A stretch of 64,000 bases of DNA from Mobula hypostoma. Lineage: Eukaryota. The stretch is from NCBI RefSeq assembly GCF_963921235.1, contig NC_086109.1, forward strand, positions 11,470,001 through 11,534,000, given 5' to 3'. The notes under the pieces were generated by a model. The model ran no database searches and was not told the DNA's origin. It saw only the letters and a program-made list of their open reading frames with translations. Every line of letters begins with the position of its first letter. Positions within the stretch are counted from its first letter, which is position 1. The translations under genes were made by a program, and so were the position numbers. Below are positions 4,001-64,000 of this stretch, one piece after another.

Positions 4001-7000
4001 ACGCTGCCTTGGACTTCCCCTGTCAGTCATGATTGCCTGATCCTCCCTTTAGAATACTTCTTCAATGTTGGAATGCATCTATTCTGTGCCCTCTGAATTG
4101 CCCCCAGAAACTCCAGTCAGTGCCATTCTTCTGATATCCCTGCTGCTGTCCTCTTCCAGTAAAATTTGACCAGGTCCTCTCTCATACCTCTGTAATTCCT
4201 TTTACTCAACTGAAATACTAATACATCTAACTTTATTTTCTCTGTCTCAAATTGCAGGATGAATTCTATCATATTATGATCACTGCCTTCCAAGGGTTCC
4301 TTTACCTTTAGCTGCCTAATCAAATCTAGTTCATGACACAGCTTCCAATCCTGAATTGTGTTTCCCCTAGTGGGGTCAATGACAAGCTACTCAAAAAATC
4401 AACAAATTCCCTCTCTTAGAACCCAACATCAACCTGATTTTTCCAATCAATCAGCATATTGAAATCCTCCATGACTATCATAAGATTGCCATTTGAACTT
4501 GAGATTTCTATCTCCCATTGTAAATTGTATCCCACATCCTGCCCAATGTTCAGAAGCCTGAATATAACTTCTATCAGGGTCTTTATACCCTGCAGTTTCT
4601 TTTAAGGGACTCTTAGATATGGACATGGAGCTTAGAAAAATAGAGGGCTATGTGGTAGGGAAATTGTAGGCAGTTTCTAGAGTAGGTTACATGGTCAGGA
4701 CATCATTGTGGGCCGAAGTGCCTGTAATGTGCAGTGGATTTCTATGTTTCTATGTTAATTCTACCCTTAAGGATTCTACATCTTTCAATCATATGTCACT
4801 TCTTTCTAAGGATTTGATTTCATTTCTTTTTTTACCAACAGAACCACCCCACCCCTCTGACTACCTTCCTTTCCTTTCAATATAATGTGTATCTTTGGAT
4901 GTTAAGCTCCAACTATGATCGCCTTTCCGCCATGACTCAGAGATGCCCACACCATCATACCAACCAATCTCTAATTACACTTTGAGTTTTCTCACCTTAT
5001 TCTGTATGCTGCGTGCATTCAAATACAACACCTTTGTGTAACACATGTATCTAGAGATTCTTAAAAGATCATTACTAATGACCTTCAATTATGGGTTCAA
5101 CTAAGGGTCCGGTATTCATTACCCTTTTCTCTTTTGTTCCCGTTTTACACTTCAACACATCACAGTAACTTCAATGTTGCCCCTATCATCTGTCTGTTCT
5201 TCCTTAAGTCTCACTACACATTACATCTACCTGTATACCAACTGTCCAATCCTCAACCCTATCACTCCAGTTCACATTCCTACTGGCAAGCGAGTTTAAA
5301 TCCTTCCCAACAGTTGTAGCAAACATACCCACATGGATATTAGTCTCCCTTGAGTTCAGATGAAACCATTCCTTTTTGTACAGGTTATACCGTTCCCTAG
5401 AAAAGATCCCGCTGATCCAACAAATCTGAAATCCTGCCTCCTGCACCACTTCCTCAGCCACTCATTCATCTGCCAAATCTTGCTATTCTTACCCTCACAG
5501 GCGTGTGGCGCAGGCAGCAATCTAGAGATTACCACCCTGGGGTCATGCTTTTCACCTGTCTACCTAACTCTCTATATTCTCTCTTCAGGACCTCCTCCCA
5601 TTTCCTCACTATGTCATTGGTACTAATATGTACCACAACTTCTGGCTGCTCACCCTTCTCATTTAGAATATTGTGGATCTGATCCGAGACATCCCTGACC
5701 CTGGCACTGGGAGGCACAATCCATCTGGGTGTCTTTTTTATGTCTGCGGAACCTCCTGTGTGCTCCTCTGACTGTGGAATTCCCTGTAACTACTACACTC
5801 CTCTCCTTTACATTTGACCAACAAGGTGCAACACTTCACAATTGTCCGGGTTAAACTCCATCTGCCATTTGTCCATTCATATCTGCAACTGGAAGTACTC
5901 ATAGACTTTTGGCTTCTTCCTGCTGCAGCTGATAATCAGCTCTTTGGTTTCCTGAGGTTGAGTGAGAGATTGTTGCCCTGGCACCATTCAACCAGATTTT
6001 CAGTCACCCTTCTATAAGCCAATTCGTCATCACTTTTGATCCGGCCAACAACCAGTTGTGAGGTTTGTAAGCTTATAAATGGTAGCAGAGCCATACTTAG
6101 CCAAGCTGTCATAAATATAAAGTGAGTAGAGCAGGGAATAAGCATCCTCAGACAAGGGGAAATCTACAAGAGCCAATCAGCCTTCCACCAACTCGTAGGT
6201 CTTCGGGATGTGGGAAGCAACCGGAGCACATCAGGTGAAGGCAAGGAAGACTCTACACAGAAAGCAGCAGAGATCAGGAGTAGCCCCAGGCTGGTGGAGC
6301 TGTGAGTCCACAACCGTCCGAGCTGCCCCATTGTGCTGCTCCCAACGCCTGATGTCCTGTGGCGTAACTGTGATGGTGAGCTGAGACAGCAATCTTAGTC
6401 AGCAATCTTTCCATGCCATATTAATCTCTGATACTATGATATCCCCAACTGACATATTATTTTCCTCTAACCTTTATGTTAATCCAATTAAATGAAATGT
6501 ATGATGTCAATTAAAGACACTTGTATTACAGCAGAATTATCAAACTGTGATCTTAATCCGTCAATAGTTATTAATTTGAAGATGACAGTTGAAATCTCAC
6601 CTTTTGTTGTCCTTAGAATTTTCTGGTGTTTCTGGTGTGAGATGTTAAAACAAACACGTTAAACCAATTGATAATTAATTACAGCACAAAATAACTTTAA
6701 TCTTTGTCAACCTATAGGCTGGCATTGTGGTGGAGCAGCAGAACATTCAGATCTATTTACTGCATGTGCCGTGCATCGAAACAGACAGTGAAATGCATCG
6801 TTTTCATTAACAAGCAGCACCCTGCAGGATGTGCTGAGAGCCAGCCCACAAGTGTTGCCACACATTCTGGCTTCAATACATGACACCCATAATGTTCAGC
6901 AGAACAACACAGGACACAACATGCAAACAAGCAGCACATAAAGCAAGTCAGAAACGCACAACATCAACAGTAATATTATTTTGTGCTGGAGCAGGTGTGA

Positions 7001-10000
7001 AACCCTGAATCGCTTATTATTTCTGCTTCTTAGCTCCTTAAGTCAACTTATCTAGATCAGGAAGCAGAGAGTGATACAACACGGAAACAGATCCTTCAGC
7101 ATGCAGTCTGGTCCTATTTAATTCTCCCTCTCTTTTCCATCATCCCTTCCAAATTCTTACAAGGGGAATTTTACAACAGCCAGTTAACCTTCCACCTACC
7201 CCTAAGGCTTTGGGATGCAGGAGGAAACCGGACCAATTGAAAGAAATAAGGCGAAGGCAAGGAAAGCTCCACACAGAAAGCACCAGAAATCAGGATTAAA
7301 TCCAGGCTGATGGAGCTGTGAGTTCACAGCTGACGAGTTGCACCATTGTGCTGCTCCCAACTCATGAAGTTCATTGAACATAGACCATCAAACAGTACAG
7401 CACAGTACAGGCCCTTCAGCCACGAAGCGGCCAACATAATCTCTGACCCTTCCATCCCTGGTCATTCTCGCATCTCTCCTCTCCCATCAGGCAGAAGATG
7501 TAACAGGTTCTGAGCATGTACTACCAGGCTCAAGGACAGTTTTTATTCTGCTATTATCAGACCCTTGAGCAGACCTCCTGTACACTAAATGATGAACACT
7601 TGATCTCTCAATCTACCTCATCGTGGCCCTTGTAATTTGTCATGATTGCATTTTCTTTGTGACTAATACTATGTTCTGTTTTCTTTTACTGCCTTGATGT
7701 GCTTATGTTTGGAATGATCTGCCTGGATGGTGCATAAACTATGTTTTTCACTGTCTCTCGGCACACATGACAATAATCAACCAATACCAATACCGATAAT
7801 AAACCAATATCAATCTCAAGAGTCTATATGCAAGTGAAAGAATCAGTATGGAATTTCATAAGCAAAGATCAATAAGAAGACAGAAAAGATTCTGCAGATG
7901 CTGGAAATAGTTAGTAATGCACACAAAATGGTGGAGGATCTCAGCAGATCCCTCTATGGAGGGAAATAAACAGTTCATGTTTCATGCTAACGCCCTTCAC
8001 CAGTCCCAATGAAGCAACTTGGCTGAAAAAGTTGACACTTTATTCCTGTCCTCAGCTGCTGCCTGACCTGCTGAGTTCCTTCAGCATTTTGGGTGTGAAG
8101 ATGAGGAAGAAGATAGAATTCAACCAAAAAGTGGTGAGCAGTCTGGACACAAAATAGGGAAAACCGAGCAATATGAGGAGAAGGAAGATGGGTAGAAATA
8201 GAATGGAGGAAGATATAAGACAGTGAGACAATAGGAACACAATTACACTATTTGGCCTGTCAAGTCTTCTCCACCATGCTATCACGATTATTACCCTTCC
8301 CAACCCCATACTCCTGCTTTCTCCCCACAACCTTTGACAACCAAGAACCTCCACTTTAAATATACCCAGTGATTTGGTCTCCACAGTCATCCGAGACAAA
8401 GTATTGCAACTAGCTAAAGAAACTCCTCCTCATCTCTGTTCCAAAGTGGCATCCCTCTACGGAGTAGAAAGTCTGTAACGACTGAAGATTTGCATGTTCG
8501 TAAGCACTAAAGCACAGAAGTTTTAGGTTGATTCGTACCTTCAGAAATCTCCAGCATTTTAATCTGCACAATCTCAAAGTTAACCTTGTTTGTTGCTCCA
8601 CACCAGTACTCTCCTTTATCTCCTTCGTTGGTATGCTTTATGGTGACAGCAAATTCAGTGGAAGTGTTTATGATGATTGCTGGGTTTCTGCTGCTGTATT
8701 CAGAGCTGGCTATCACACTGCACCTATTTACAGAGGTTACTTTACACAAGAATTTCTCATATGATTTAAATCGGTGGTCATAGTGGCAGTGTAGGCTGGT
8801 GGCAGTTTGCATCACACCCTTCACCGTGGTATTGTCTGCTGTCCATGAACCTGCTGGTAAATGAGAAAAGGAAGAAATGAGGGGTCTAACGTAGTGGGAA
8901 TCGTGCTGACAGAACCTTCAGTGCTACAGTTAGCTGAGGCTGTGTGGGAAGACTACTGACCATGAATGGGGGGGACCCAAGTAGAACAGGCCTTGCCAAG
9001 TCTGAGAGATAATGCAAGAAGTTAAGAAGGCTAAAAGAAAGCATGAAATTGCTCCAGCAGACAAGCTGAAGGAGAATTGTAAGGGAATCTACAGGCATGC
9101 TATGAGCAAAAGAATTGCAAGGGACAGAATTGGTCCTCTGGAAGACCAGCATGTTAATCCATGTGTGGAGCCAAAACAGATGGGGGAGATTTTAAATGCA
9201 TTCTTTGCACCTGTATTTTCTTGGGAGACAGATACAGAGTTTATAGAAGCGAGGTAAAGCAGTATCAACTTCATAGACCCTGTACAGATTACAGAGGAGG
9301 AGGTGTTTGCTACTCTTTGGCAAATCAGGGTGGATATTTCTCCACAGCCTGACTAAGTGTTCCCTCGGACCCCGTGGGAGGGAAATGCAGAAATTGCCAG
9401 GGCCCCAGCAGAGATATTTAAAACATCTTTAGTGACAGGAGAGTTACTGTAGGATTGAGGGACAGCCAATGTTGTTTCACTGTTTAAAAAAGGCTTTAAA
9501 CAGAAACCAGGAGATTATAGGCTGGTGTGCCTGACGCCAGTTGTGGGAAAGTTATTGGAAGGTATTCTCAGAGACCAGATATATAAGTAATTATATTGAT
9601 ATGGACTGGTTAATGATAGTCAACATGGCTTAGTGTGTGGTAGATCATGTCTAACCAATCTTACGGAATTTTTTGAGGAAGATAACAGGAAAGTGGATGA
9701 AGACAATCAGTGTATGTTATCTATGTGGACTTTAGTAAGGCATTTGTTAAGGTCCTGCATGGGAAGCTGGTGAAGAAGGTCCATCGCTTGGCATACTGGG
9801 ACCGATCTGGAATGCTAGGGCACTGAGGAGTGTGGTAGACAAAGTGATCTGGGAATACAAGTTCATGATTCATTGAAAGTGGTGTCACAGTTAGATAGGA
9901 CTGTAAAGAAAGCTTTTGACACTTTGGCCTTCAGAAATCAAAGTATTGAGTCCCCAACATGGGATGTTATGTTGAAGTTGTATAAGATTTTGGTGAGGCC

Positions 10001-13000
10001 TAATTTGGAGTATAGTGTGCAGTTCTGGTCATCTACCTACAGGAAAATTGTAAACAAGGTTGAGAGAGTGCAGAGAAAATTCACAAGGATGTTGCTGGCT
10101 CTGGAGGACCTGAGTTATAAGGGAAGATTGAATAGGTTCGCATTGTATTTTTTAAGAATGTAGAAGATTGAGAGGAGCTTTGATAAGGGTACACAATATT
10201 AGGTGTGGTATGGATGGGGTAAATGCAAGCAAGCTTCCTCCACTGAGATTGGGTGGGTCTACAACCATAGGTTAAAGGTGAAAGGTGAGAACTTTAAGGG
10301 GATCATGAGGGAATCTTCTTCACTCAGAGGGTCATGAGAGTGTGGAATGAGCTGCCAGCACAAGTAGTTCATGTGATTTCAATATTTAAGAGAAGTTTGA
10401 ATAGGTACATGGATAGTAGGGATATGGAGGGCTATGGTCCCGGTGCAGGTTGATGGAAGTAGGCAGGTTAAATGGTTTTGTCATCATCTAGATGGAGCAA
10501 AGGACCTGTTTCTGTGCTGTACTTCTCTATGACTCTATGATGTACAGTCTTGGGCACATGTAAAAAAATTCTGTAAAGCGAAGATATTAAAAATAAATGA
10601 AATGAAAATATTATAAATATCAAAATAATTACAAAACGTGAAATTAAATCAACATTTGGTGTGAGCACACATTGCCTTTAAAGCTGCATCAGTTCTCTTA
10701 GAGGCACTGTCATGCAACTTTATAAGGAAATCGATTGGTGGGTTCTTCCAAGGATCTTGGAGATCTTGCTACAGTTCTTCTGAAAGACTTTGGCTGTCTC
10801 AATTGTTTCTGTCTCTCCAGGTAATCCCAGACAGCCTCAAGATCATGGCTCTTTGGAGGCCATACCATCAGTTGCAGAATTCCTTATTCTTATCTTTTGC
10901 TGAAGGTAGTTCTTTATGACCTTGGCTGTGTGTTTGGGGTCATTCACGTACTGCAGAATGAAGTTGGGACTGATCAGACACCTCCCTGATGGTATTGCGT
11001 GATGGATGAGAATTTGCTTGTGCTTCTCAACATTGAAGATTCCAGTAATTCTGATCAGACCATCAAATCTATTTGCAGAAATGTAGCTGCAATCCTGCAG
11101 GGAACCCCTGCCATGCCTCACTGTTGGCTGCAAACACTCATCCATGTAGCATTCTCTAGCTCTTCTACAGAGAAACTGCCTCCTGTCTGAGTCAAAAGTT
11201 TCAAATTTTGATCATCAGTCCAGAGCACTTGCTGCCATTGTTCAGCACCCCAGTCTATGAGTTTCTATGTCCATGGGCGACTCTCTTGGCTTTGTTTCCA
11301 AAGTGGAGGAGTAGCTTTTTGGCAGCAAATCTTCCATGAAGACCACCTGATAATATTACCCTGGACTATAGAGGTGTGTACTTGGGTTCCAGTTGTTTCT
11401 GTAAGTTTAGAGCTGATAGCAGTGCTGGACTTTGTCCAGTTTTGAATGGATGTCAGTTTGATGTATCTCACATCTGCTGCACTCAGCTTCCCTAGCTGAC
11501 CACTGCATTTCTGGTCCTCAGCCTTGCTTGTTTCTTTGTGCATCTTCAGAAGACTTGGACAACGCATCTTGAAACTTCCATCTGCCATGAACTTTCTGCT
11601 TGGGAGAAACCTTAGCGATGGAAGATATTACACTGTGTCTTGTTGCTATGCTCACTCTTGCCATGGTGTAAGAATTGATGATTTGAAGCTTAAACTGTCA
11701 CATCACCTTTTAGTTTGCCTGTCCTTTGCCCAGTTTGATTCCTGCCACACCCGTTGCTGTTTCAGTTAATCTGTTTAGTTCATTCAACTTATTATATCAT
11801 TGATCATTAGCACCTGTTTGTCATCTTTGTTTAATCATGCACTGGACTGTATGCCTACAAGGTAATCAAGTTTTATTTGTAAAGTGGCCCAATACTTAAT
11901 ATGTTACTTTCTTTAACAGTTCCAAAAATTTCCCTGAAACATCTAAATTTTTTGGGAAAATGAATGTTGGGAAATCTAAACTTTGTTCTTTTCTACTGAC
12001 ACACTAATGCAGAAGGCAAACATTAAACATCTAAAACAAAGTTTATATAAAAAATCTAGGATGCCAAAGGCTTTTGTACTGTACTGTATTGCCAAGACAT
12101 AGGCCCTTTGGCCATTGTGTTCACTCAGTGGGTTGAAGACACTTAGCTTTCCCATGAAGTGCTCTCTTGGAAGAGGGTAGGAGAATGGGGTTGAGAGGGA
12201 AAATAAATCAGCCAGGATAGAATGGTGTAGCAGGTTTGATGGGCCAAATGTTCTAATTTTGCTCCTGTGTCTGATAGTCTTATGGAAGACCGGAGTCAGA
12301 CAGTGTCTCCACTCTCTCTTCCCTTGTTTGCATGCTGTATACAACCCTGTGCTAAATCCATCAGGAAGGATGAGAGCAGGAAGAGGGGTGACATTGCCAG
12401 GCAGTTCGGACACACATTTCAAAATCTCCCTGTAACTGGACAAAGCTGCAATCATCTGCTTAGATCCCCAGTCAGTTCGCAGATTGATCAGCATCTGTAA
12501 CTGCTCTGATTTGGCATCCTGGGTTAGATTGAACCACAGGAAGAGCGAGGTCATGCTCTTCGGTAACTGGCACAACCTATCCAATGACCCCTTCGCTGTC
12601 AGGCTGGACTACCTGAGCTGCTGAGTTCCTTCAGCATATTGTGTTCATTGTAACCAATTTACTAATTTCTGTATCAACAAACCTTCCTCTTCTCTCTCAT
12701 TCCTGATGCAGGGTCTGAATCTGACTTGCACCTTTCACATCTACAGTTGCTAAGTGGCCTCCTCAGTTCTTCCCATGTTTCATGTCGTTTCAGTGTCTGG
12801 AATCTGTTGTCTCTTCTGTCTTCTCTGATAACACTTTGGGAAGTGAAGGTTATATCATGATCAATGCATTCATTATGGGACGACAGTCCAGCTGGTACCC
12901 TGACTTAAGCCTAAGCCTTACCTGCGGTAACCTTCAGCATTACAATGTCTGATACGTCAATATATCTTCCGTTTATACGTCCACACCAGTATATCCCTGA

Positions 13001-14733
13001 ATCACTCTCCATAAGTTGTCTTGTGGTTACAACAATAGATCCTGTGTGTATTCTGATTGATATTCTTGGATGGTAACTGTATTTCTCTGTATCCACTACT
13101 GTATTGCATTTCCTTTGATAGTTTGTTTTACACAAAACTATGGTTCCCCGTTTCTCTGCAGGTGAACATCGCACTGTGACCGTTTCTCCCACTCCTGCTC
13201 GTACCACCATTGTGTGATGTCGTGTCAACGATTCTGTCAGTAAAATTAAAGTAAAAAAATTAATTTTTATTGATTGATTTTGTTTTATTTACAGTAACAG
13301 GCCCTACTGGCCCAATGAGCCCGCGCAGCCCAATTGTACACGTGATCAATTGACCTACGAACTTGTACTTCTTTAGAACGTGGAATGAAACCAGAGCACA
13401 TGGAGGAAACCTACGTGATCACAAGGACGATGTACAAATGCTTTACAGACAGCATTGGCAATTGAACCTGGATCGCTAGTGCTGTAATAGTGATACATAG
13501 AAGATAGAATAGTACAGCACAGTACAGTAGAGACAGCGGCGGAATTGAACCTGGATCGCTAGCATTGTAGCAGCATTACATAGATCATAGAACACTACAG
13601 CACCGTACAGATCCTTTGGCCCATGATGTTGAGCCGACCTTTTAATCTACTATCAGATCAATCTAACCCTATCATCTTGTACACCTCTATCATGTTACAT
13701 CTCATCCTCCTTCACTCTAAAACAAAGAGCCCTAGCTTGCTCCACCTATCTTCATAGGACATGTTCTCTAATCTAGGCAGACCTCCACTAACCATTAAGC
13801 TACCAAGATGATATTTTATAGAATCTCAATGAAGTATTTCCATAAAAACCTTACATGAAACTTAATCTTCGCTCACTTCTCTGGATCAATGGCTAAATAT
13901 TCTTACAGCATAAAATGAAGCCATTTCAGCCCTTTGGGCCAATGCAGTTCCATTTCCCACCAGTCCTTACAAAGAGATGCTATGGACTAGATGGACCAAA
14001 TAGTCTCCCACCATACTGAACCCATTCCATTACCTCATTTTCTGACATGATAGCCCTTGGTTCTTAACAGACTTGATAGTCATTGCGGCATTGCCTATTG
14101 TGGAAGTTGGCTTTTGGGTTTTCTACACACCTCTGCACTTCAAAAGTACTTTGTTGTTTGTGAAGTGTGCTGTGAAATTTTTATAGACCTGTAGATCATG
14201 CACCATAGAAACAAGTGCTTCAGCTCACTGAGTCTGTGCAGACCATAAAACACTCACTTCCATGAATCCCTTTCTCTTCTCCCCACATTCCCATCAACAC
14301 CCCTTAGATACTCACCGACAATTTACCATGGACAATTATCTTACCAAGCTGTACATCTTTGGGATGTGGGACGGTGGGGTAATTCGAACACCCGGAGGAA
14401 ACCCACACAGGGAGACATAGCACGCCAAAGCAATGGAGGACAGATTGGGCCAAAAGCAAACCCTCTGTGCTGCACGTACTCCATAGAACTTTTTTGCTAA
14501 ATCCTCCCCCACAACTTTGTTTCAGCTCACTATTCCTCGTACTAAAAAGTAAAATTGATTGTCACCTTTCCTGATCCCTGTTGCTTATTCTCAGCGGTAG
14601 AGTTTCATCACGTGTCTGGTTAGCATTAAACAATTTTTAAGGTTATATGTAACTAGATGCTATAGTTCAATATATGTGAAAAGAAAGTCTTACTTGAGAT
14701 GACAGAGAGCAATAGCAGAGCAGCAAACAGCAT
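978..14733 (-). CDS. Gene A: CD300/pIgR-like (MDIR-like) two-Ig-V-domain type I membrane receptor; 3' end incomplete
   Basis: Five phase-compatible exons with GT/AG sites: leader 14694-14733, V1 12922-13233, V2 8539-8850, stalk 6601-6631, TM 978-1096. Spliced product MLFAALLLLSVISKSLTRHH...YWCG...VTAGSWTADNTT...YWCG...EISEETPENSKDNKSSGPQIWYILLPLLLGLLVLLLIVLLIKKRRRPQKIVTPA. Both V domains carry the CD300/pIgR C-x7-C extra disulfide and the DxGxYWCG motif. Confidence 0.88.
1500..1925 (-). mobile_element. Rex1/Babar-like LINE RT remnant
   Basis: VDRVSGLKFLGVNLPEDLSW resembles the Rex1 FKFLGV...DLSW motif. Confidence 0.55.
1945..5800 (-). mobile_element. Cluster of degenerate CR1 LINE fragments (gene A intron 4)
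   Basis: ORF 2402..2794 (LGIQIHSSLK...LIRLHLQYCIHFW), 4117..4323 (LEGSDHNMIEF) and 5529..5717 (ORF1-like VVVHISTNDI). Confidence 0.75.
5800..6140 (-). mobile_element. Rex1/Babar-like RT remnant (paralogue at about 54700-55010)
   Basis: VVGRIKSDDELAYRRVTENLVEWCQGNNLSLN matches the Rex1 VVGLI..DE.AYR.EV..L..WC..NNL.LN pattern. Confidence 0.7.
6601..6631 (-). CDS. Gene A 31-nt stalk exon (ETPENSKDNK-S)
   Basis: ccag|AA ACA CCA GAA AAT TCT AAG GAC AAC AAA AG|gtgag. Phase 1 to 2 exactly bridges V2 (phase 1) and TM (phase 2); conserved in gene B. Confidence 0.8.
8539..8850 (-). CDS. Gene A membrane-proximal Ig V domain exon (V2)
   Basis: 312 nt, phase 1-1, cagcag|GT...GAA G|gtacg; HCHY...KFLCKVTSVNRC...DKGEYWCG; ORF track 8507..8824. 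Confidence 0.92.
8995..10535 (+). mobile_element. Degenerate CR1 ORF2 and 3' end in gene A intron 2
   Basis: ORFs 9012..9257 and 9873..10163 (LVRPNLEYSVQFWS...VERVQRKFTRM); orthologous copy at about 57885-59445. Confidence 0.8.
10545..12086 (-). mobile_element. Tc1-family DNA transposon, degenerate, about 1.54 kb
   Basis: TA|CAGT ends (left TIR partly deleted; right end cttttgtactgtactg|ta); HTH remnant KLSAADVRYIKL...STAISSKL and DDE remnant ILQYVNDPKHTAK. Confidence 0.85.
12922..13233 (-). CDS. Gene A membrane-distal Ig V domain exon (V1)
   Basis: 312 nt, phase 1-1, ttttactgacag|AA...GCA G|gtaagg; VRC...LCKTNYQRKC...DSGIYWCG; ORF track 12911..13228. Confidence 0.92.
14694..14733 (-). CDS. 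Gene A leader (signal peptide) exon MLFAALLLLSVIS
   Basis: ATG, hydrophobic core, TCA A|gtaag phase-1 donor; conserved at 63480-63519. Confidence 0.85.
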
Positions 14734-14785
14734 TGTTCCAGTGATGGTTCTCAGTTTCCCGTGACTGTGTCCACAATATGCTCTT

Positions 14786-14950
14786 CTTCCTCTTTTTTTA
14801 AAAGAGATGTCGTGGATTGCACCATTTCCTCTTAAATTAGCAAATAGCTTTGCAATGTGATACAGAAAAAGGGAGATTAACAAATGTCCTTTTTCACATG
14901 CTACTGTGTATATTGTTACAAGTTTCCAGTTTGGGGAAACAGGAAGATGA
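14786..14950 (-). promoter_or_regulatory. Gene A proximal promoter motifs (PU.1/Ets-like GAGGAAG at 14786-14796; CAGGAAG at about 14940-14946)
   Basis: AAAAGAGGAAG about 55 bp upstream of the ATG on the minus strand; both motifs conserved in gene B (GAGGAAGTG 63567-63575; CAGGAAG about 63726-63732). Motif match only. Confidence 0.4.
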
Positions 14951-14969
14951 CTCTTAACTGAATATAAGT

Positions 14970-15918
14970 TGTTATGTACCCCGTAACTGGGTTGCCAAAC
15001 CAGCAGAAATGGACCACTTAGTTGGAGTCTGGATTACTGGAACTAAGAAAGTTTTATTAAAGAAATAAGTAACACAGTACTCTAAATGTAAGGATATAAA
15101 TGCAACAGGTTAGCAATGATAAAACACACATGTACACAGAAGTAGGATAATAGGATCAATCAAGCTCTATCGCAGTCTAGGGGTAAAATGATCAGTCTCA
15201 AGTGACATAGAGTTCAGTCCAGTTTAGTTCAGTTCGCAGTGATCANNNNNNNNNNNNNNNNNNNNNNNNNNNNNNNNNNNNNNNNNNNNNNNNNNNNNNN
15301 NNNNNNNNNNNNNNNNNNNNNNNNNNNNNNNNNNNNNNNNNNNNNNNNNNNNNNNNNNNNNNNNNNNNNNNNNNNNNNNNNNNNNNNAACAGACCTTTGA
15401 TATTCCTCGCAGTTAGCTTTCGGGCGAGCCTTTTGTAATGTCTTCTGTGGTCACCGACTGTGACCCCTCCGCTCCAGATACGACTGTTCTTCCGCGGTGA
15501 ACCCGGCACCCAGGCAAGGGCGGACACACACACCAGGTTCCCGCCGATCGTACCTTCCACCCTGTGCGTCTATGGTCGGTCCCGCGACCAGACCTCCAAA
15601 ACTTCCACCAACTTGTGGGGGCGGGGGGGGCGGGGAGGCACAACGCACTTCCAGGGTCTCGTTATCTCGTGGTGTCGTGGTGTGTCGCTTGCCTTAGCGA
15701 ACCTGTTCCTTTTATCCCCCTGCTGGGGTATCGCCTGTCCATCAAACTTCAAACAGTTCAGGTTCAAAGCAACCGGTCTGATAATACTCGAAACTGTGTC
15801 TATTTTCGTTAATCTCTCTCGTCTCTCTCTTATTAGCATTTTGAATGTTTCCCCCATTTGCCTCTCTCTTATCTCTCTTATCGGCATCAATCTTCTGATA
15901 ACTTGGTCTTTTGTCACA
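14970..15918 (-). mobile_element. LTR (TG...CA) insertion with 4-bp TSD AAGT, containing an assembly gap
   Basis: gaatataagt|TGTTA...TCACA|aagtacacacag versus the empty paralogous site gaatataagtacacacag at about 63746; AATAAA on the minus strand at 15053-15058. Confidence 0.85.
15246..15387. other. Assembly gap (142 N)
   Basis: Run of n characters. Confidence 1.
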
Positions 15919-17255
15919 AAGTACACACAGAGGAAAGAGGAGCTGCTAAAAAAACAGCATTACCTTCACCCTACACAAAATGCTGTAAGAACTCAGCAGA
16001 CCAGGCAGCGTCCATGGAAATGAGTAAAAAGTTGATGTTTCAGGCTGAGACCCTTCATCCAGACTCAAGATTAAGGGTCTCTTTTCTATGGATGCTGCCT
16101 GGCCTGCTGAGTTCCTCCAACATTTTGTGTGAGTTGCTTGCATTTCCAGCGTCTGCATGTTTTCTCTTATTTGTGGTTCTCTTCATCCTTACTGTTTCAG
16201 TGGCAGGATGGACAATATTCAGCATCTGAGTCACTGCTATCTGGAAGGAGGTACTGTAGCCTTGGGTCCCACACCACCAGCTTCAGGAACAGTAATGAAC
16301 GCTCAACCATCAGGCTCCTGAACCAGTGTGGATAACTTCACTCACCACAACACTGAACTATTCCGCAACCTGCTGATTCACTTTCAAGGACTTTACAACC
16401 CATACTTTCAATATTATTTATTTTTCAAGGACTTTGCAAACTATGCTCTCTCTATCCATTCTTTTATTTATATATTTTTTATTTGCACAGTTTGTCTTTA
16501 TGTGCACATTGGTTGTTTGTCTTTGTGTGTAGTCTTTTATTGACTCTATTGTGTTTCTTTGTATTTACTGCAAATGCCTGCAAGAAAATGAATCTCAGGA
16601 TGGGAAATGGTGACCTATTCATACTTTGATCATAAATTTACATTGAACTTTGATATATTGCAAAGATGGAACTGAAGCAGGACATATGACTCACAGTATG
16701 TCGTCAACTATCAGTAACCCTGACATCTTCTTGTTGACAGCCGGCACAGATGAATTTCGGGGGGATGTATGCTTGACCCACTGCTCTATTCTCTCTAGGC
16801 TTGTGTATGTGGCTAGGCACATACATCCATAAATTCGCAGACTACGCTACTGTTGATGTGACTTGATAGAGGTGTACATGATGATAAGAGACGTAGATAG
16901 AGTATCTACAAGTGTTCTCCACTCCCCTGAGCCATCCCACCAATCGCTGAAATATCATGTTAAATTTTAATACATGCAACACAGAAAAGTTGCTGGTGAA
17001 CGCAGCAGGCCAGGGAGCATCTCTAGGAAGAGGTACACTGAAGAATTTAAAACCTTTTTGCGTTTTTAAATTTTATTAGTTTATGAAAACCGTTTAAGGT
17101 CCCTCTGATGTTACCTCCATCAGAGGTAACATCAAAAACTTAAGTTTTCTTGTTATGCTTTATGTCGTCCATCACTGCCATTTTCTATCCTTCGTGCATT
17201 CCTTTTGCACTCTGTTCCAAAGATGAGGAGACCTATCCCAGTTGCAGTCCAATTA

Positions 17256-52100: not shown

Positions 52101-55100
52101 ATGGATGCAACGTTTTCAGTGCTTTCGTGGCTATCTCAGGGTATTTAGCCTTGACTTTGATCCGGAATGCCGGCAGAGATGTTACGTCAAACATACTTTT
52201 CAGCCCGCCGTCATTTGCAAGCTCGAGGAGTTGATCATCTTCCCGCGCTGACATGGATGACACGCGGGTAATGACCTCGCATGCATTCAAGCTCAACAGT
52301 GGGCGTGGCAGGGAATGAGGAATGGTGCAGCTGACTCATATCATTTCATATCGCCAAATCATATCGTTTCCTCGCAGCCCGGCAGCACATGCTTTGCGGC
52401 CCAGTGGTTGGGGACTGCTGTTCTAATGTGTGTCCTTTGAATGACACCTTCAGCCATATTTTGGCCATTTAACCATGTGTTTCTCCTCTGTTATTTCACT
52501 CAACTTATTGGTTTGCAGTTACAGACACTTAGGAGAGATTTTGAATGAATTAACCTGGACTGATCTTGAGCTTCTACTTTTAATTGTGAATCACACGGCA
52601 TGGAAGTGAAAAGATTGGAAAAAAAATCTACCTTTGGAAAGCTGTCATGCAATGTATCGAAACAGTGCAAAGAAACAGAGCTCTAAGGAGTATCCAACAG
52701 GTCAGAGTCCAAAATTTTTGAATGATCAACTCATAGTTCCTAACAGATCAAGAAGATATCATTAGTTACACACAAAGTAGTTAATAAATGACACCAAGAA
52801 ATACATTTTATCTAGGTGTATATTATCAGTGACACTGAGAAATGCATATTATTAAATGTAATTTGTGGAAATGCATTTTATTAGCAAGTGACACTGAGAA
52901 ATGCATTTTATTGAAACAGTTGAAAGAGTCAGACCTCTGAAGAGTATCCATTGGATCACAGTCGATACCTGGTGAATTTTCAGCTCATGGTCACTGATGG
53001 ACAAAGGAAATTTAATTAACAACGCACAGAGAATTCTGTAACAGACACTGGGAAATGCCATTACACATGAAATCATCATTCAGTGTGATGTAGTGTTGTG
53101 GCACGGAGTATCGAGCAGTCTGATGGTTGAATGCTGATTCTCCAACTTATGTCCACATCTTGGAACCGTCGCACTGCCAGTGGAAGTGTGTGAAATTAAT
53201 GTTATATGCTCCAAACCACTGTGTAAAGAAAGAAAGAAAGAAATCTGCAAGTGAAGTCCATGCTATTGGATTCAAGTAACAGATGTTCATCAGTATTTCA
53301 GTTTGCATTTTCATTCTTTCATCTGCAGTTCCTATATAATCCATGTGGTCTAGAGGGACAAGGGCAGTAGATGCATGACAACAGAGCTACTCCCGAATCC
53401 CTTGAAGGACACACAGTGTTGTTCAGTCATTATCACCAGATCAGAATGGTGGGAATGCCCAACATTTCATTATTGTGGGAGATTGCTCGCTGCGTGAGCT
53501 ACAGCCATTCAAGTTTTCCAGGCCTGAGAGGGTGATCACCAGTTGGAGCCAGACACATTCACCAGTGAGTCTTCCAAACTCCTCATTCAAAATGGGAAGT
53601 TAGGAGCTGTGTGCCAAATGCTGGCCTTGTCCTTGATGCTTACATCCAGTAAATAAATAAGGTAACATTTGAGACATAATGCTGATAAAATGATTTAGAG
53701 CAAAAAGTTTCAATGTTTGTTACAGTAACAGAAGCCCATTTATGTTACCTCTGTGTGTGGCCTTCATCTTAATGATCTTCAACAATGGATTCAACTCAGG
53801 GTCCTGTATTCTTTACCCTTTTCTATCTTGTTCCCATGTTATACTTGAACACATCACAGTAACTGCAACTTTGCCCTTATTATCTGTCTGTTTTTCCTTA
53901 AATCTCACTACACATTGCATCTACTTGTATAGCAAATGCCCCAACTTCAGCTTTATCATTCCAGTTCCCATTCCCACTGGCAAGCTAGATTAAATCCTTC
54001 CCAGCAGTTGTAGCAAATATGCCTGCAAGGATATTAGTCCCTCCTGAGTTCTGGTGAAACCAATCCTTTCTGTACAGGTCATACCGTTCTTCAGAGGAAT
54101 CCTACTGTTCCAAAAAATCTGTAAACCTGCCTCCTGCTCCACTTCCTCAACCACTCATTTATCTGCCAAATCTTTCTATTCTTACCTTCACAGGCATGTG
54201 GCGCAGGCAGCAATCTAGAGATTACCACCCTGGAGGTCATGCTTTTCACCTGTCTACCTAACCCCCTATATTCTCTCTTCAGGACCTCCTCCCTTTTCCT
54301 CCCTATTGCATTGGTACCAATATGTACCACAACTTCTGGCGGCTCACCCTCTCCATTTAGAATATTGTGGGCCCAATCTGAGACATTCCTGACCCTGGCA
54401 ACAGGAATGCAGAATCCATCTGGGTGTCTTTTTTATGTCTTGAGTTCCCAACTGGCATAGTAACCCCCTATATTCTCTCTTAAGGACCTCCTCCCATTTC
54501 CTCCCTATTGCATTGGTACCACAACTTCCCCATTTAGAATATTGTGGGTCTGATCCAAGATATCCCTGACCCTGGCACTGGGAGGCACAATCCATCTGGG
54601 TGTCTTTTTTTATGTCTGCGGAACCTCCTGTGTGCTCCTCTGACTATGGAATTCCCTGTCACTACTGCACTCCTCTCCTTTACATTTGACCAACAAGGTG
54701 CAACACTTCACAATTGTCCGGGTTAAACTCCATCTGCCATTTGTCCATCATATCTGCAACTGAAAGTACTCATAGACTTTCAGCTTCTTCCTGCTGCAGC
54801 TGATAATCAGCTCTTTGGTTTTCTGAGGTTGAGTGAGAGATTGTTGCCCTGGCACCACTCAACCAGATTTTCAGTCACCCTTCTATAAGCCAATTTGTCA
54901 TCACTTTTGTTCCGGCCAACAACCAGTTGTGAGGTTTGTAAGCTTATAAATGGTAGCAGAGCCATACTTAGCCAAGCTCTCATAAGTATAATGTGAGTAG
55001 AGCAGGGGATAAGCATCCTCAGACAAGGGGAAATCTACAAGAGCCAATCAGCCTTCCACCAACTCGTAGGTCTTTGGGATGTGGGAAGCAACCGGAGCAC

Positions 55101-58100
55101 ATCAGGTGAAGACAAGGAAGACTCTACACAGAAAGCAGCGGAGATCAGGAGTAGATCCACGTTGGTGGAGCTGTGAGTCCACAACCGTCCGAGCTGCCCC
55201 ATTGTGCTGCTCCCAACACCTGACGTCCTGTGGCGTAACTGTGATGGTGAGCTAAGACAGCAATCTTAGTCTGCACGGGATATTTGAGTTGAAGGGCAGG
55301 TTTCCATGCCATATTAATCTCTGATACTATGATATCCCCAACTGACATATTATTTTCCTCTAACCTTTATATTGATCAAATTAAATGAAATGTATGATGT
55401 CAATTAAAGACACTTGTATTACAGCAGAATTATCAAACTGTGATCTTAATCAGTCAATAGTTATTAATTTGAAGATGACAGTTGAAATCTCACCTTTTGT
55501 TGTCTTTAGAATCTTCTGGTGTTTCTGATGTGAGATGTTAAAATAAACACGTTAAACCAATTGATAATCAATTACAGCACAAAATAACTTTAATCTTTGT
55601 CAACCTATAGGTTGGCATTGTGGTGGAGCAGCAGAACATTCAGATCTATTTACTGCATGTGCCGTGCATCGAAACAGACAGTGAAATGCATCGTTTTCAT
55701 TAACAAGCAGCACCCTGCAGGATGTGCTGAGAGCCAGCCCACAAGTGTTGCCACACATTCTGGCTCCAATACATGACACCCATAATGTTCAGCAGAACAA
55801 CACAGGACACAACATGCAAACAAGCAGCACATAAAGCAAGTCAGAAACGCACAACATCAACAGTAATATTATTTTGTGCTGAAGCAGGTGTGAAACCCTG
55901 AATCGCTTATTATTTCTGCTTCTTAGCTCCTTAAGTCAACTTATCTAGATCAGGAAGCAGAGAGTGATACAACACGGAGACAGATCCTTCAGCATGCAGT
56001 CAGGTCCTATTTAATTCTCCCTCTCTTTTCCATCAATTCCTTCCAAATTCTTACAAGGTGAATTTTACAATGGCCAGTTAAACTTCCACCTACCCCTATG
56101 GCTTTGGGATGCAGGAGGAAACTGGACCAATTGAAAGAAATAAGGCGAAGGCAAGGAAAGCTCCACACAGAAAGCACCAGAGATCAGGATTAAATCCAGG
56201 CTGATGGAGCTGTGAGTTCACAGCTGACGAGTTGCACCATTGTGCTGCTCCCAACTCATGAAGTTCATTGAACATAGAACATCAAACAGTACAGCACAGT
56301 ACAGGCTTCAGCCACGAAGCAGCCAACATAATCTCTGACCCTTCCATCCCTGGTCATTCTCGCTTCTCTCCTCTCCCATCAGGCAGAAGATGTAACAGGT
56401 TCTGAGCATGTACTACCAGGCTCAAGGACAGTTTTTATTCTGCTATTATCAGACCCTTGAGCAGACCTCCTGTACACTAAATGATGAACACTTGATCTCT
56501 CAATCTACCTCATCGTGGCCCTTGTAATTTATCTTGACTACATTTTCTTTGTGACTAGTACTATGTTCTGATTTCTTTTACAGCCTTGATGTGCTTATGT
56601 TTGGAATGATCTGCCTGGATGGTGCATAAACTATGTTTTTCACTGTCTGTTGGCACACATGACAATAATCAACCAATATCAATACCGAAAATAAACCAAT
56701 ATCAATCTCAAGAGTCTAGACACATGTGTAATAGTCAGTATGGAATTTCATCAGCAAAGATCAATAAGAAGACAAAAAAGATTCTGCGGATGCTGGAAAT
56801 ATTTAGTAATGCACACAAAATGGTGGGGGATCTCAGCAGATCCCTCTATGGAGGGAAATAAACAGTTCATGTTTCATGCTAATACTCTTCACCAGTCCCA
56901 ATGAAGCAACTTGGCTGGAAAAGTTGACACTTTCTTCCTGTCCACAGCTGCTGCCTGACCTGCTGAGTTCCTTCAGCATTTTGTGTGTGAAGATGAGGAA
57001 GAAGATAGAATTCAACCAAAAAGTGGTGAGCAGTCTGGACACAAAATAGGGAAAACCGAGAAGTATGAGGAGAAGGAAGATGGGTAGAAATAGAATGGAG
57101 GAAGATATAATACAGTGAGACAATAGGAACACAATTACACCATTTGGCCCGTCAAGTCTTCTCCACCATGCTGTCACAATTATTACCCTTCCCAACACCA
57201 TACTCCTGCTTTCTCCCCATTACCTTTGAAACCAAGAACCTCCACTTTAAATATACCCAATGATTTGGTCTCCACAGTCATCCGAGACAAAGTATTGCAA
57301 CTAGCTAAAGAAATTCCTCCTCATCTCTGTTCCAAAGTGGCATCCCTCTACGGAGTAGAAAGTCTGTAAAGACTGAAGATTTGCATGTTCGTAAGCACTA
57401 AATCACAGAAATTTTAGGTTGATTCATACCTTCAGAAATCTCCAGCATTTTAATCTGCACAATCTCAAAGTTAAATATGTTTGTTGCTCCACACCAGTAC
57501 TCTCCTTTATCTCCTTCGTTGGTCTGCTTTATGGTGACAGCAAATTCAGTGGAAGTGTTTATGATGATTGCTGGGTTTCTGCTGCTGTATTCAGAGCTGG
57601 CTATCACACTGCACCTATTTACAGAGGTTACTTTACACAAGAATTTCTCATATGATTTAAATCGCTGCTGATAGTGGCAGTGTAGGCTGGTGGCATTTTG
57701 CATCACACCCTTCACCGTGGTATTGCCTGCTGTCCATGAACCTGCTGGTAAATGAGAAGAGGAAGAAATGAGGGGTCTAACGTAGTGGGAATTGTGCTGA
57801 CAGAACCTTCAGTGCTACAGTTAGCTGAGGCTGTGTGGGAGGACTACTGACCATGAATGGGAGGGACCCCAGTAGAACAGGCCTTGCCAAGTCTGAGAGA
57901 TAATGCAAGAAGTTAAGAAGGCTAAAAGAAAGCATGAAATTGCTCCAGCAGACAAGCTGAAGGAGAATTGTAAGGGAATCTACAGGTATGCTAAGAGCAA
58001 AAGAATTGCAAGGGACAGAATTGGTCCTCTGGAACACCAGTATGTTAATCCACGTATGGAGCCAAAACAGATGGGGGAGATTTTAACTACATTCTTTGCA

Positions 58101-61100
58101 CCTGTATTTTCTTGGGAGACAGATACAGAGTTTATAGAAGCGAGGGAAAGCAGTATCAACTTCATAGACCCTGTACAGATTACAGAGGAGGAGGTGTTTG
58201 CTACTCTTTGTCAAATCAGGGTGGATATTTCTCTACAGCCTGACTAAGTGTTCCCTCGGACCCTGTGGAAGGGAAGTACAAAAATTGCCAAGGCCCCAGC
58301 AGAGATATTTAAATCATCTTTAGTGACAGGAGAGTTACTGTAGGATTGAGGGATAGCCAATGTTGTTTCACTGTTTAAAAAAGGCTTTAAACAGAAACCA
58401 GGAAATTATAGGCTGGTGTGCCTGATATCAGTTGTGGGAAAGTTATTGGAAGGTATTCTCAGAGACCAGATATATAAGTATTTGTATTGACACGGACTGG
58501 TTAATGATAGTCAGCATGGCTTAGTGTGTGGTAGATCATGTCTAACCAATCGTACAGAATTTTTTGAGGAAGGTAGCAGGAAAGTGGGTGAAGACAAGTC
58601 AGTGGATGCTATCTACATGGACTTTAGTAAGGCATTTGTTAAGTTCCTGCATGGGAAGCTGGTGAAGAAGGTTCATCGCTCGGCATGCTGGGATCGACCT
58701 AGAATGGTAGGGCACTGAGGAGTGTGGTAGACAAAGTGATCTGGGAGTACAAGTTCATGATTCATTGAAAGTGGTGTCGCAGTCAGATAGGACCGTAAAG
58801 AAAGCTATTGACATTTTGGCCTTCAGAAATGAAAGTACTGAGTCCCCAACATGGGATGTAACATTGAAGTAGTATAAGATTTTGATGAGGCCTAATTTGG
58901 AGTATTGTGTACAGATTTGGTCATCTACCTACAGGAAAATTGTAAACAAGGTTGGAGAGAGTGCAGAGAAAATTCACAAGGATGTTGCTGAGTCTGGAGG
59001 ACCTGAGTTATAAGGGAAGATTGAATAGGTTCACATTGTATATTTTAAGAATGTAGACGATTGAGAAGAGATTTGATAAGGGTACACAAAATTGCGAGGG
59101 GTATGTATGGATGGGGTAAGTGCAAACAAGCTTCTTCCACTGAGGTCGGGTGAGACTATAACCATGGTTAAGTGTGAAAGGTGAGAACATTAAGGGGATC
59201 ATGAGGGGAATCTTCTTCACTCAGAGGGTCATGAGAGTGTGGAATGAACTGCCAGCACAAGTAGTTCATGTGATTTCAATACTTAAGAGAAGTTTGAATA
59301 GGCACATGGATAGTAGGGATATGGAGGGATATGGAGGGCTATGGTCCCGGTGCAGATTGATGGAAGTAGGCAGGTTAAATGGTTTTGTCATCATCTAGAT
59401 GGAGCAAAGGACCTGTTTCTGTGCTGTACTTCTCTATGACTCTATGATGTACAGTCTTGGGCACATGTAAAAAAATTCTGTAAAGCAAAGATATTAAACA
59501 AAATTAATGAAATGAAAATATAAATATCAAAAATATTATAAAAAGCTAAATCAAATCAATATTTGGTGTGACCACACATTGTGTTTAAAGCTGCATCAGT
59601 TCTTTTAGAGGCATGGTCGTGCAACTTTAGAAGGAAATTGATTGGTGGGTTCTTCCAAGGACCTTGAGGAACTTGTCACAGTTCTTCTGAAAGACTTCGG
59701 CTGTCTCAGTTGCTTTAGTCTCTCCTGGTTATCCCAGATGGCCTCGATCATGTTGATATCAGGGCTCCTTGGAGGCCATACCATCAGTTGCAGAACTCCT
59801 TGTTCTTAATTTGTTGCTGAAGATAGTTCTTTATGACCTTAGCCATGTGGTTGGGTTCATTGGCATGCTGCAGAATGAAGCTGGGACTGATCAGGCACCT
59901 CTCTGATGGATGAGAATTTGCTTGTACTTCTCAACATTGAAGATTCCAGTAATTCTGATCAGACCATCAAATCGATTTGCAGAAATGTAGCTGCAATCCT
60001 GCAGGGAACCCCTGCCATGCCTCACTGTTGGCTGCAGACATTCATCCATGTAGCATTCTCTAGCTCTTCTACAGACAAACTGTCTCCTGTCTGAGTCAAA
60101 AGTTTCAAATTTTGATCATCAGTCCAGAGCACTTGCTGCCATTGTTCAGCACCCCAGTCTATGAGTTTCTATGTCCATGGGCAAGTCTCTTGGCTTTGTT
60201 TCCAAAGTGGAGGAGTAGCTTTTTGGCAGCATTGGTTAGATCCCCAGTCAGTTCGCAGATTGATCAGCATCTGTAACTGCTCTGATTTGGCATCCTGGGT
60301 TAGATTGAACCACAGAAAGAGCGAGATCTTGCTCTTCGGAAACTGGTACAACCTATCCAATGACCCCTTCGCTGTCAGGCTGGACTACCTGAGCTGCTGA
60401 GTTCCTTCAGCATATTGTGTTCATTGCAACCAATTTACTAATTTCTGTATCAGCAAACCTTCCTCTTCTCTCTCATTCCTGATGCAGGGTCTGAATCTGA
60501 CTTGCACCTTTCACATCTACAGTTGCTAAGTGGCCTCCTCAGTTCTTCCCGTGTTTCATGTCTTGTTTCAGTGTCTAGAATCTGTTGTCTCTTCTGTCTT
60601 CTCTGATAATACTTTGGGAAGTGAAGGTTACATCATGATCAATGCATTCATTATGGGACGACAGTCCAGCTGGTACCCTGACTTAAGCCTAAACCTTACC
60701 TGCGGTAACCTGTAGCATTACAATGTCTGAGGTATGAATATCCCGCTGATAGTCTAAATATCCACACCAGTATATCCCTGAATCGCTCTTCACAAGTTTT
60801 CTTATAGTTACAGAAACAGATCCATTGTGTCTCTGGATTGATGTTCGCTTGTATTTATGGGTGACAGTGCTCACTATTATATCGCACTGTTCTGGGGAGT
60901 ATGCTTTACACCAGGCTATCCTTCCCGATTCCTGTGCACGTGGACATTCCATTATGACTGTTTCTCCCACTCCTGCTCGTCTCACCATCATAGAAACTTG
61001 CGCCAATGAATCTGTCAGTAAAATGTAAAGTCAAAATATTAATTTTTATTTATTGATTTTGATTTATTTACAGATATAGCACAGTAACAGGCCCTACTGG

Positions 61101-63519: not shown

Positions 63520-64000
63520 TGTTCCAGTGATGGTTCTCAGTTTCCAGTGACTGTGTCTACAATATACACTTCCTCCTCTTTTTTGAAAGGATCTGTCATG
63601 GATTGCACCATTTCCTCTTAAATTAGCAAATACCTTTGCAATGTGACACAGAAAAAGGGACATTAACAGATGTCCTTTTTCACATGTTAACGTATATATT
63701 GTTAAAAGTTTTCAGTTTGGGGAGACAGGAAGATGACTCTTAACTGAATATAAGTACACACAGAGGCTAGAAGATCTGCTAAAAAAACAGCATTACCTTC
63801 ATCCTATACAAAATGCTGTAAGAACTCAGCAGACCTGGCAGCAGCCATGGAAAAGAGTCAAAAGTTGATGTTTCAGGCGCTTCATCCGGACTCAAGATTA
63901 AGGATCTCTTTTCTATGGATGCTGCCTGGCCTGCTGAGTTCCTCCAACATTTTGTGTGAGTTGCTTGGATTTCCAGCATCTGCATGTTTTCTCTTGTTTG

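Follow-up and report, generated by a model that had tools for sequence, protein, structure and literature searches.

The window analysed here, a stretch of 64,000 nucleotides (nt) of Mobula hypostoma DNA, contains two related receptor genes, designated A and B, both on the minus strand. Each copy comprises a leader exon followed by the exons V1 and V2, which encode the membrane-distal (D1) and second (D2) immunoglobulin (Ig) V-set domains. The two copies share about half of their V1 residues and nearly all of their V2 residues, and this difference (50% versus 93% identity) was shown to reflect mostly a difference in age, and not a domain-specific selective regime.

The two genes are tandem duplicates with a spacing of 48.8 kb, and the segmental duplication pairs positions 5076-16173 (A) with 53770-64000 (B). 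The coding part of the gene A leader exon (14694-14733), encoding the signal peptide, includes an ATG, a hydrophobic core and a phase-1 GT donor, and corresponds to the N-terminus of the annotated protein P0164; the gene B counterpart lies at 63480-63519. The leader-V1 intron of gene A spans 13234-14693. The V1 exons lie exactly where a preliminary description of this DNA had placed them, at 12922-13233 in gene A and at 60700-61011 in gene B. Both are 312 nt long and of phase 1-1, with AG acceptors and GT donors; the gene A exon was assigned from its phase, translation, Pfam match and a spliced RNA contig, and the gene B exon has an open frame and intact splice sites. The V2 exons lie at 8539-8853 (A) and 57430-57744 (B). 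All four V exons matched the Pfam V-set family (PF07686), with E = 1.5e-10 for V1 of gene B.

The NCBI Mobula hypostoma protein P0164/P0168 matched the leader, V1 and V2 of gene A at 100%. A 698-nt spliced contig from an RNA-like run of the same species joined 12922-13233 to 8853 with 0 mismatches, which confirms the exon borders of gene A and its expression. In the same run (X5), 70% of the sampled B-V1 words were present. No annotated protein for gene B was found among the Mobula hypostoma proteins retrieved. V2 of gene A begins at a NAGNAG tandem acceptor (8850-8853, with alternative acceptors at 8853 and 8850), and it is because of this acceptor that the annotated isoforms differ by one alanine (343 versus 344 residues). 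Gene A continues from V2 to a transmembrane exon (976-1098), located by tblastn of P0168 and a scan of open reading frames, which is 98% identical to the annotated protein and different from the exons that follow V2 in gene B; the exons for the cytoplasmic tail of gene A lie beyond the start of the window. Alternative C-terminal exons were identified downstream of the gene B V2 exon, at 53010-52855, 52741-52631, 45325-45179 and 37337-37212, and these match alternative isoforms of M. birostris genes.

Gene A encodes a type I receptor whose two V domains belong to the CD300/pIgR kind. V1 carries the B-F disulfide cysteines, a second C-C' disulfide pair and the strand-F motif DxGxYxC, and the residues C23, C35, C43, C84, D78, G80 and Y82 were invariant in 14 sequences, including V1 of both genes. 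The AlphaFold2 model, with a mean predicted local distance difference test (pLDDT) score of 86.5, has the strand order of a V-type domain. The best structural matches by Foldseek were pIgR ectodomains, and the best solved relatives by sequence were pIgR (7jg2_E, E = 1.8e-17) and CD300 (2q87, 9z0m, 2nms). The closest relatives of the receptor are from rays and sharks; they include a Pristis protein named CMRF35-like molecule 8 and a skate homologue (P0004) that is 50-54% identical. A search among representatives clustered at 50% identity, in which the best match was 44%, showed the family only, and a homologue search with the V1 exon by itself, in which length restricts the candidates, returned no match.

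The pIgR proper binds polymeric Ig with J chain, carries it across epithelia and has a cytoplasmic sorting tail. The ray gene is like pIgR (teleost two-domain form, PDB 5F1S; human ectodomain, 5D4K) in its V-set domains with an extra C-C' disulfide, and like the teleost form in its layout of two tandem V domains. It is unlike pIgR in that the identity is only ~21%, and in that it belongs to a fast-evolving multigene family and its annotated protein has a tail with two motifs, VTYSAV and VEYSAL, that resemble the immunoreceptor tyrosine-based inhibitory motif (ITIM). The ITIM is typical of inhibitory receptors, and the tail suggests an inhibitory leukocyte receptor. The CD300 (CMRF35-like) molecules of mammals have the same kind of V domain and are encoded by a multigene family in which inhibitory and activating receptors are paired; they have a single V domain, whereas the ray gene has two. 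The ITIM-like tail and the multigene dynamics of the ray gene resemble both CD300 and the modular domain immune-type receptors (MDIR) of the skate. The latter make up a multigene family in cartilaginous fish, with both activating and inhibitory members and with Ig domains resembling CD300, TREM and pIgR (PMC3031540), and their likeness to the ray gene is drawn from that review's description only. Gene A carries the NCBI label 'polymeric immunoglobulin receptor-like'; this name was taken as an automatic label only, because no shark homologue of pIgR had turned up in an early survey (PMC4016189).

The divergence profile and the homogenised tract

The Kimura two-parameter (K2P) distance between the two copies was approximately 0.03 from position 5651 of gene A to the V1 donor at 12921, with patches of transposable elements left out, and 0.029 within the V2 exon. 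It rose to 0.38 in the V1 exon, was 0.18 in the intron just upstream of V1, and fell to 0.11 in the part of this intron near the leader, the range near and upstream of the leader being 0.08-0.11. Sliding divergence and a maximum-likelihood change-point thus delimit a low-divergence tract of ~7.3 kb (A 5651-12953, B about 54527-60731), which covers V2, its downstream flank and the whole of the V1-V2 intron at ~97% identity. The transposable-element patches inside the tract were 9-12% diverged.

The limit of the tract on the V1 side was placed at 12953, with a 2-unit log-likelihood (lnL) interval of 12932-12953 (16/497 versus 88/278 differences on the two sides), and the change-point model was better than a model with no change by 61 lnL units. 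The tract therefore stops at the 3' end of the V1 exon, which encodes the end of the G strand, or up to 31 nt inside it; the end cannot be placed more finely because the V1 codons in this interval are conserved across the family. The silent divergence of V1 (0.26 at 4-fold sites and 0.27 at codons for identical residues) greatly exceeds that of the 3' intron (0.03), and the 3' boundary is for this reason historical. On the other side of V1, the change-point between the exon body (31% differences) and the upstream intron (15.6%) fell exactly on the splice acceptor, 13233/13234 (interval 13177-13243). Because this 5' step sits at the acceptor, the hyper-divergent block coincides with the exon on both sides.

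V2 is near-identical between the copies, with 97 of 104 residues the same and 7 different (in-frame 8540-8851 versus 57431-57742), in agreement with the preliminary description. The reading that V2 is conserved by selection did not hold, as the V2 exon is 2.9% diverged, the same as its introns. Because V2 equals its introns in divergence (about 3%), its similarity stems from conversion or re-duplication of the tract, not from purifying selection. The nine nucleotide differences in V2 comprised 8.5 nonsynonymous and 0.5 synonymous changes, the opposite of the dN/dS below 1 that would have supported the preliminary description. The comparison of substitutions between A and B, and the comparison with the introns, gave no sign of purifying selection on V2.

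Some of the V2 differences are clustered. In the FG loop three contiguous bases differ at 8584-8586 (KV to IF), and in the BC loop another three differ within six bases at 8774-8779 (DH to QQ); M. birostris holds a third state at both clusters (TF and EQ, respectively). These clusters could reflect multi-nucleotide mutation, micro-conversion, or selection on the loops of D2 that resemble complementarity-determining regions (CDR).

Several insertions present in one copy only were also identified. One of 1128 bp lies in the V1-V2 intron of gene A (11328-12455), inside the tract; two of 250 bp (61457-61706) and 729 bp (61773-62501) lie in the leader intron of gene B; and one of 953 bp lies upstream of the gene A leader (14966-15918) and includes a run of N (15246-15387). 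They are probably transposable elements, and the read depth in the introns that hold them was very high. Contigs from two further sequenced organisms, designated organism B and organism E, had about 11% mismatches over the upstream intron of gene A (13783-14499), and the organism-B contig around V1 (12246-13316) had only 2.8%; a further mosaic breakpoint is probably located between 13316 and 13783. The organism-E contig over the V1-V2 intron ends at 12932, within the interval of the tract boundary, as expected of an assembly graph if the paralogues of organism E share the intron and diverge in V1.

Lineages and rates of change of V1

In a maximum-likelihood tree of D1, V1 of gene B grouped with the proteins of Hypanus sabinus and Hemitrygon akajei (support 95/93), to which it is 69-72% identical in D1. 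V1 of gene A grouped only with M. birostris (84% identity), with a stem length of 0.69; the path to the A-type, measured from the common node, was 1.4-1.9 times as long as the paths to the B clade, a moderate acceleration. The D1 identity between A and B was 51%, near that of either to the sawfish protein (52-54%). In the D2 tree, all Mobula sequences formed one clade (support 100/97). The discordance between the trees is a signature of concerted evolution in D2 with old lineages kept in D1, and taken with the sharply bounded low-divergence tract, which includes non-coding DNA, it is what a gene-conversion mosaic displays. The B-type is the D1 lineage that the stingrays also have, and the A-type is confined to Mobula and somewhat accelerated. 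The caveat given in the preliminary description, that V1 sits in a patch of older divergence, has become the main explanation of the contrast between the domains, as V1 of gene B clusters with the D1 of stingrays. In several cross-species comparisons D1 also varied more than D2, as for gene B versus Hypanus (70% versus 84% identity).

Three annotated genes are present in M. birostris (P0170, P0173, P0176), and their isoforms, as far as fetched, share an A-type V1. B-V1 words were found in none of the organism-B runs. In M. birostris, homogenisation seems to have included V1.

In a global protein alignment, V1 of the two genes matched at 52 of 104 columns, and each sequence had a single gap of one codon. 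Of the identical residues, 8 used different codons, which bears out the earlier counts; tblastn gave 50% identity. The dN of the whole exon was 0.353 and the dS was 0.472, and the ratio (omega) was 0.75 by the Nei-Gojobori method (NG86), 0.76 by the Li-Wu-Luo method (LWL85) and 0.82 by maximum likelihood, with a bootstrap interval of 0.45-1.28. Omega was 0.83 at sites variable in the family, 0.36 at sites conserved in the family, and 1.00 for V1 without the C'-D and FG loops, which carry the indels and whose silent differences are saturated as well. In no partition of V1 (loops, strands, family conservation, or without the two indel loops; 0.57-1.12) was omega significantly above 1. The preliminary description had expected a V1 ratio above 1, and had taken a ratio at or below 1 as a sign of age and of conversion of V2; the latter is what was found.

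Other measures pointed to an elevated rate of change in the exon. The dN of V1 (0.353) exceeded the divergence of the adjacent upstream intron (0.178; Z = 3.5), and the silent divergence at 4-fold sites and at identical-residue codons (0.26 and 0.27) was close to that of the upstream intron (0.18). The differences at codon positions 1, 2 and 3 numbered 35, 30 and 26, and were statistically equal (chi-square p = 0.51). With strand limits taken from the AlphaFold2 model, the tip regions (N-terminus, BC, C'-D and FG) had 21 of 30 codons replaced, compared with 29 of 72 elsewhere (Fisher p = 0.009). The earlier statement that V1 change is concentrated in loops was thus borne out for these four regions, and the C-C' hairpin also differs; overall, the strands were nearly as variable as the loops (47% versus 52%).

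Between gene A and M. birostris, 16 of 103 V1 residues and 14 of 104 V2 residues differ, and each difference requires one nucleotide change. The organism-B contig over 12246-13316, which includes V1, had 30 mismatches in 1071 nt. If its V1 is assumed to equal that of the annotated M. birostris protein, the 312 nt of the exon hold 16 or more changes and the 759 nt of intron 14 or fewer (Fisher p = 0.007), and under the same assumption the two Mobula species differ by no more than about 2% in the intron beside V1. In V2, 12 of 12 of the organism-B differences among those listed were nonsynonymous and reproduced residues specific to M. birostris. Conversion from the B-type was considered as the source of the 16 V1 differences and was not favoured, as the changes are scattered and, by eye, derived on both lineages.

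Two features of the A-type V1 were noted. The M. hypostoma exon encodes a leucine (Leu34, 13128-13130) in place of the C-strand tryptophan found in most relatives, M. birostris among them; leucine also occurs at this position in two shark relatives. The A-type V1 is without the NGS glycosylation sequon that the family has in the DE loop, and it is more basic (isoelectric point 9.6 versus 9.0).

Origin of the contrast between V1 and V2

We consider it probable that the locus has a mosaic history, with old V1 lineages beside a converted remainder, together with selection on the ectodomain. Gene conversion or a secondary duplication of ~7.3 kb would have homogenised V2, its downstream flank and the V1-V2 intron; the tract would have halted at the end of the V1 G strand, leaving out the V1 body and the upstream intron, and the two V1 bodies would represent old D1 lineages. 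Both V domains appear to change no more slowly than expected under neutrality, and selection is likely to have acted on the coding sequence, not on V1 alone. Replacements are concentrated on the tip of the domain (N-terminus, BC, C'-D and FG), and the core of the fold is kept. We infer that the ectodomain may have been under ligand-driven diversifying selection, and that the V1 body may have escaped conversion because distinct D1 specificities were selected for. More tentatively, the two D1 lineages may be ancient and may have been held apart by selection as the rest of the gene evolved in concert, with a barrier to conversion at the CDR3-like FG loop, and with replacement in both V domains several times faster than neutral between the Mobula species.

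Several points weigh against the mosaic history with selection. The codon omega of V1 is 0.75-0.82 and nowhere significantly above 1. The saturated C'-D and FG loops may be misaligned after the indels, or may simply be older, and the upstream intron may be partly homogenised, in which case dN would look too high relative to intron divergence. The comparison between species holds only if the organism-B contig and the annotated M. birostris protein have the same V1, and with three genes in M. birostris the orthology is not one-to-one. An approximately unbiased (AU) test does not reject a D1 clade of all Mobula sequences (p = 0.216), and a post-speciation duplication with strong acceleration afterwards would be compatible with this result.

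Age and conversion could account for much of the profile without positive selection, if old V1 paralogues had undergone near-neutral drift of their surface residues and V2 and the introns had been homogenised recently. The omega values of 0.75-1.0, with intervals that include 1, the old split supported by the D1 tree, a silent V1 divergence (0.26-0.47) at least that of the upstream intron, and the equal differences at the three codon positions are all as expected of such a history. We nevertheless regard it as unlikely, as the dN of V1 is twice the divergence of the adjacent intron, the 5' step sits at the splice acceptor, and 13-16% of residues were replaced between two Mobula species in which the intron differs by about 2% or less. 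Furthermore, the average omega is near 1 while that of the conserved core is 0.36, so omega would be above 1 somewhere in V1. A hypervariable V1 that alone contacts the ligand and is under diversifying selection, with V2 held by purifying selection, would fit the identities of 50% and 93%, the enrichment of replacements in the tip loops, and the greater variability of D1 across species. It is very unlikely given that V2 does not exceed its introns in similarity, that its differences are almost all nonsynonymous, that nearly as many V2 as V1 residues differ between the Mobula species, and that omega of V1 is not above 1. What stands of the diversifying selection that the preliminary description had proposed for V1 as the ligand-contact domain is the evidence for selection on the coding sequence and the enrichment at the tip; its restriction to V1 and an omega above 1 do not.

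An omega near 1 would also result from decay of one copy, by relaxed constraint or early pseudogenisation of V1 in either gene, and the leucine in place of the C-strand tryptophan, the missing NGS sequon of the A-type, and the missing gene B protein among those retrieved could be read in the same way. Decay is the most improbable of these explanations. Both exons have open frames, intact splice sites, the four cysteines and the DxGxYxC motif; gene A is spliced in RNA, and B-V1 words occur in the same run; omega is 0.36 at family-conserved sites; two shark relatives share the leucine; and the model folds with a high mean pLDDT. Since the core of the fold, the two disulfides, the splice sites and expression have all been retained, neither copy is a pseudogene, and that reading was rejected on the intact frames, the splice sites, the core residues and the RNA evidence.

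Near-identical segments beside divergent ligand-binding exons are well known in immune receptor families. Mosaics due to conversion include Siglec-5/14, KIR and LILR, and MHC exons are more diverged than their homogenised introns. The ray locus is like these in that homogenised segments adjoin an old divergent exon, and in that this exon is more diverged than its flanking introns; it is unlike them in that homogenisation took in the second Ig domain and left D1 as the divergent part.

The mosaic history indicates that a striking contrast between a hypervariable and a conserved domain in duplicated immune genes can come about where a conversion tract ends, and not from differing selection. If the D1 lineages have indeed been kept apart, this innate receptor of rays would show an MHC-like pattern of a diverged exon and homogenised introns, suggestive of an arms race driven by pathogens or by self-ligands. 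The wider significance is modest for now. The results also draw attention to the two-domain pIgR/CD300-like receptors of rays as a fast-evolving family with lineage-specific D1 types, which could be tractable for the study of innate receptor diversification in cartilaginous fish.

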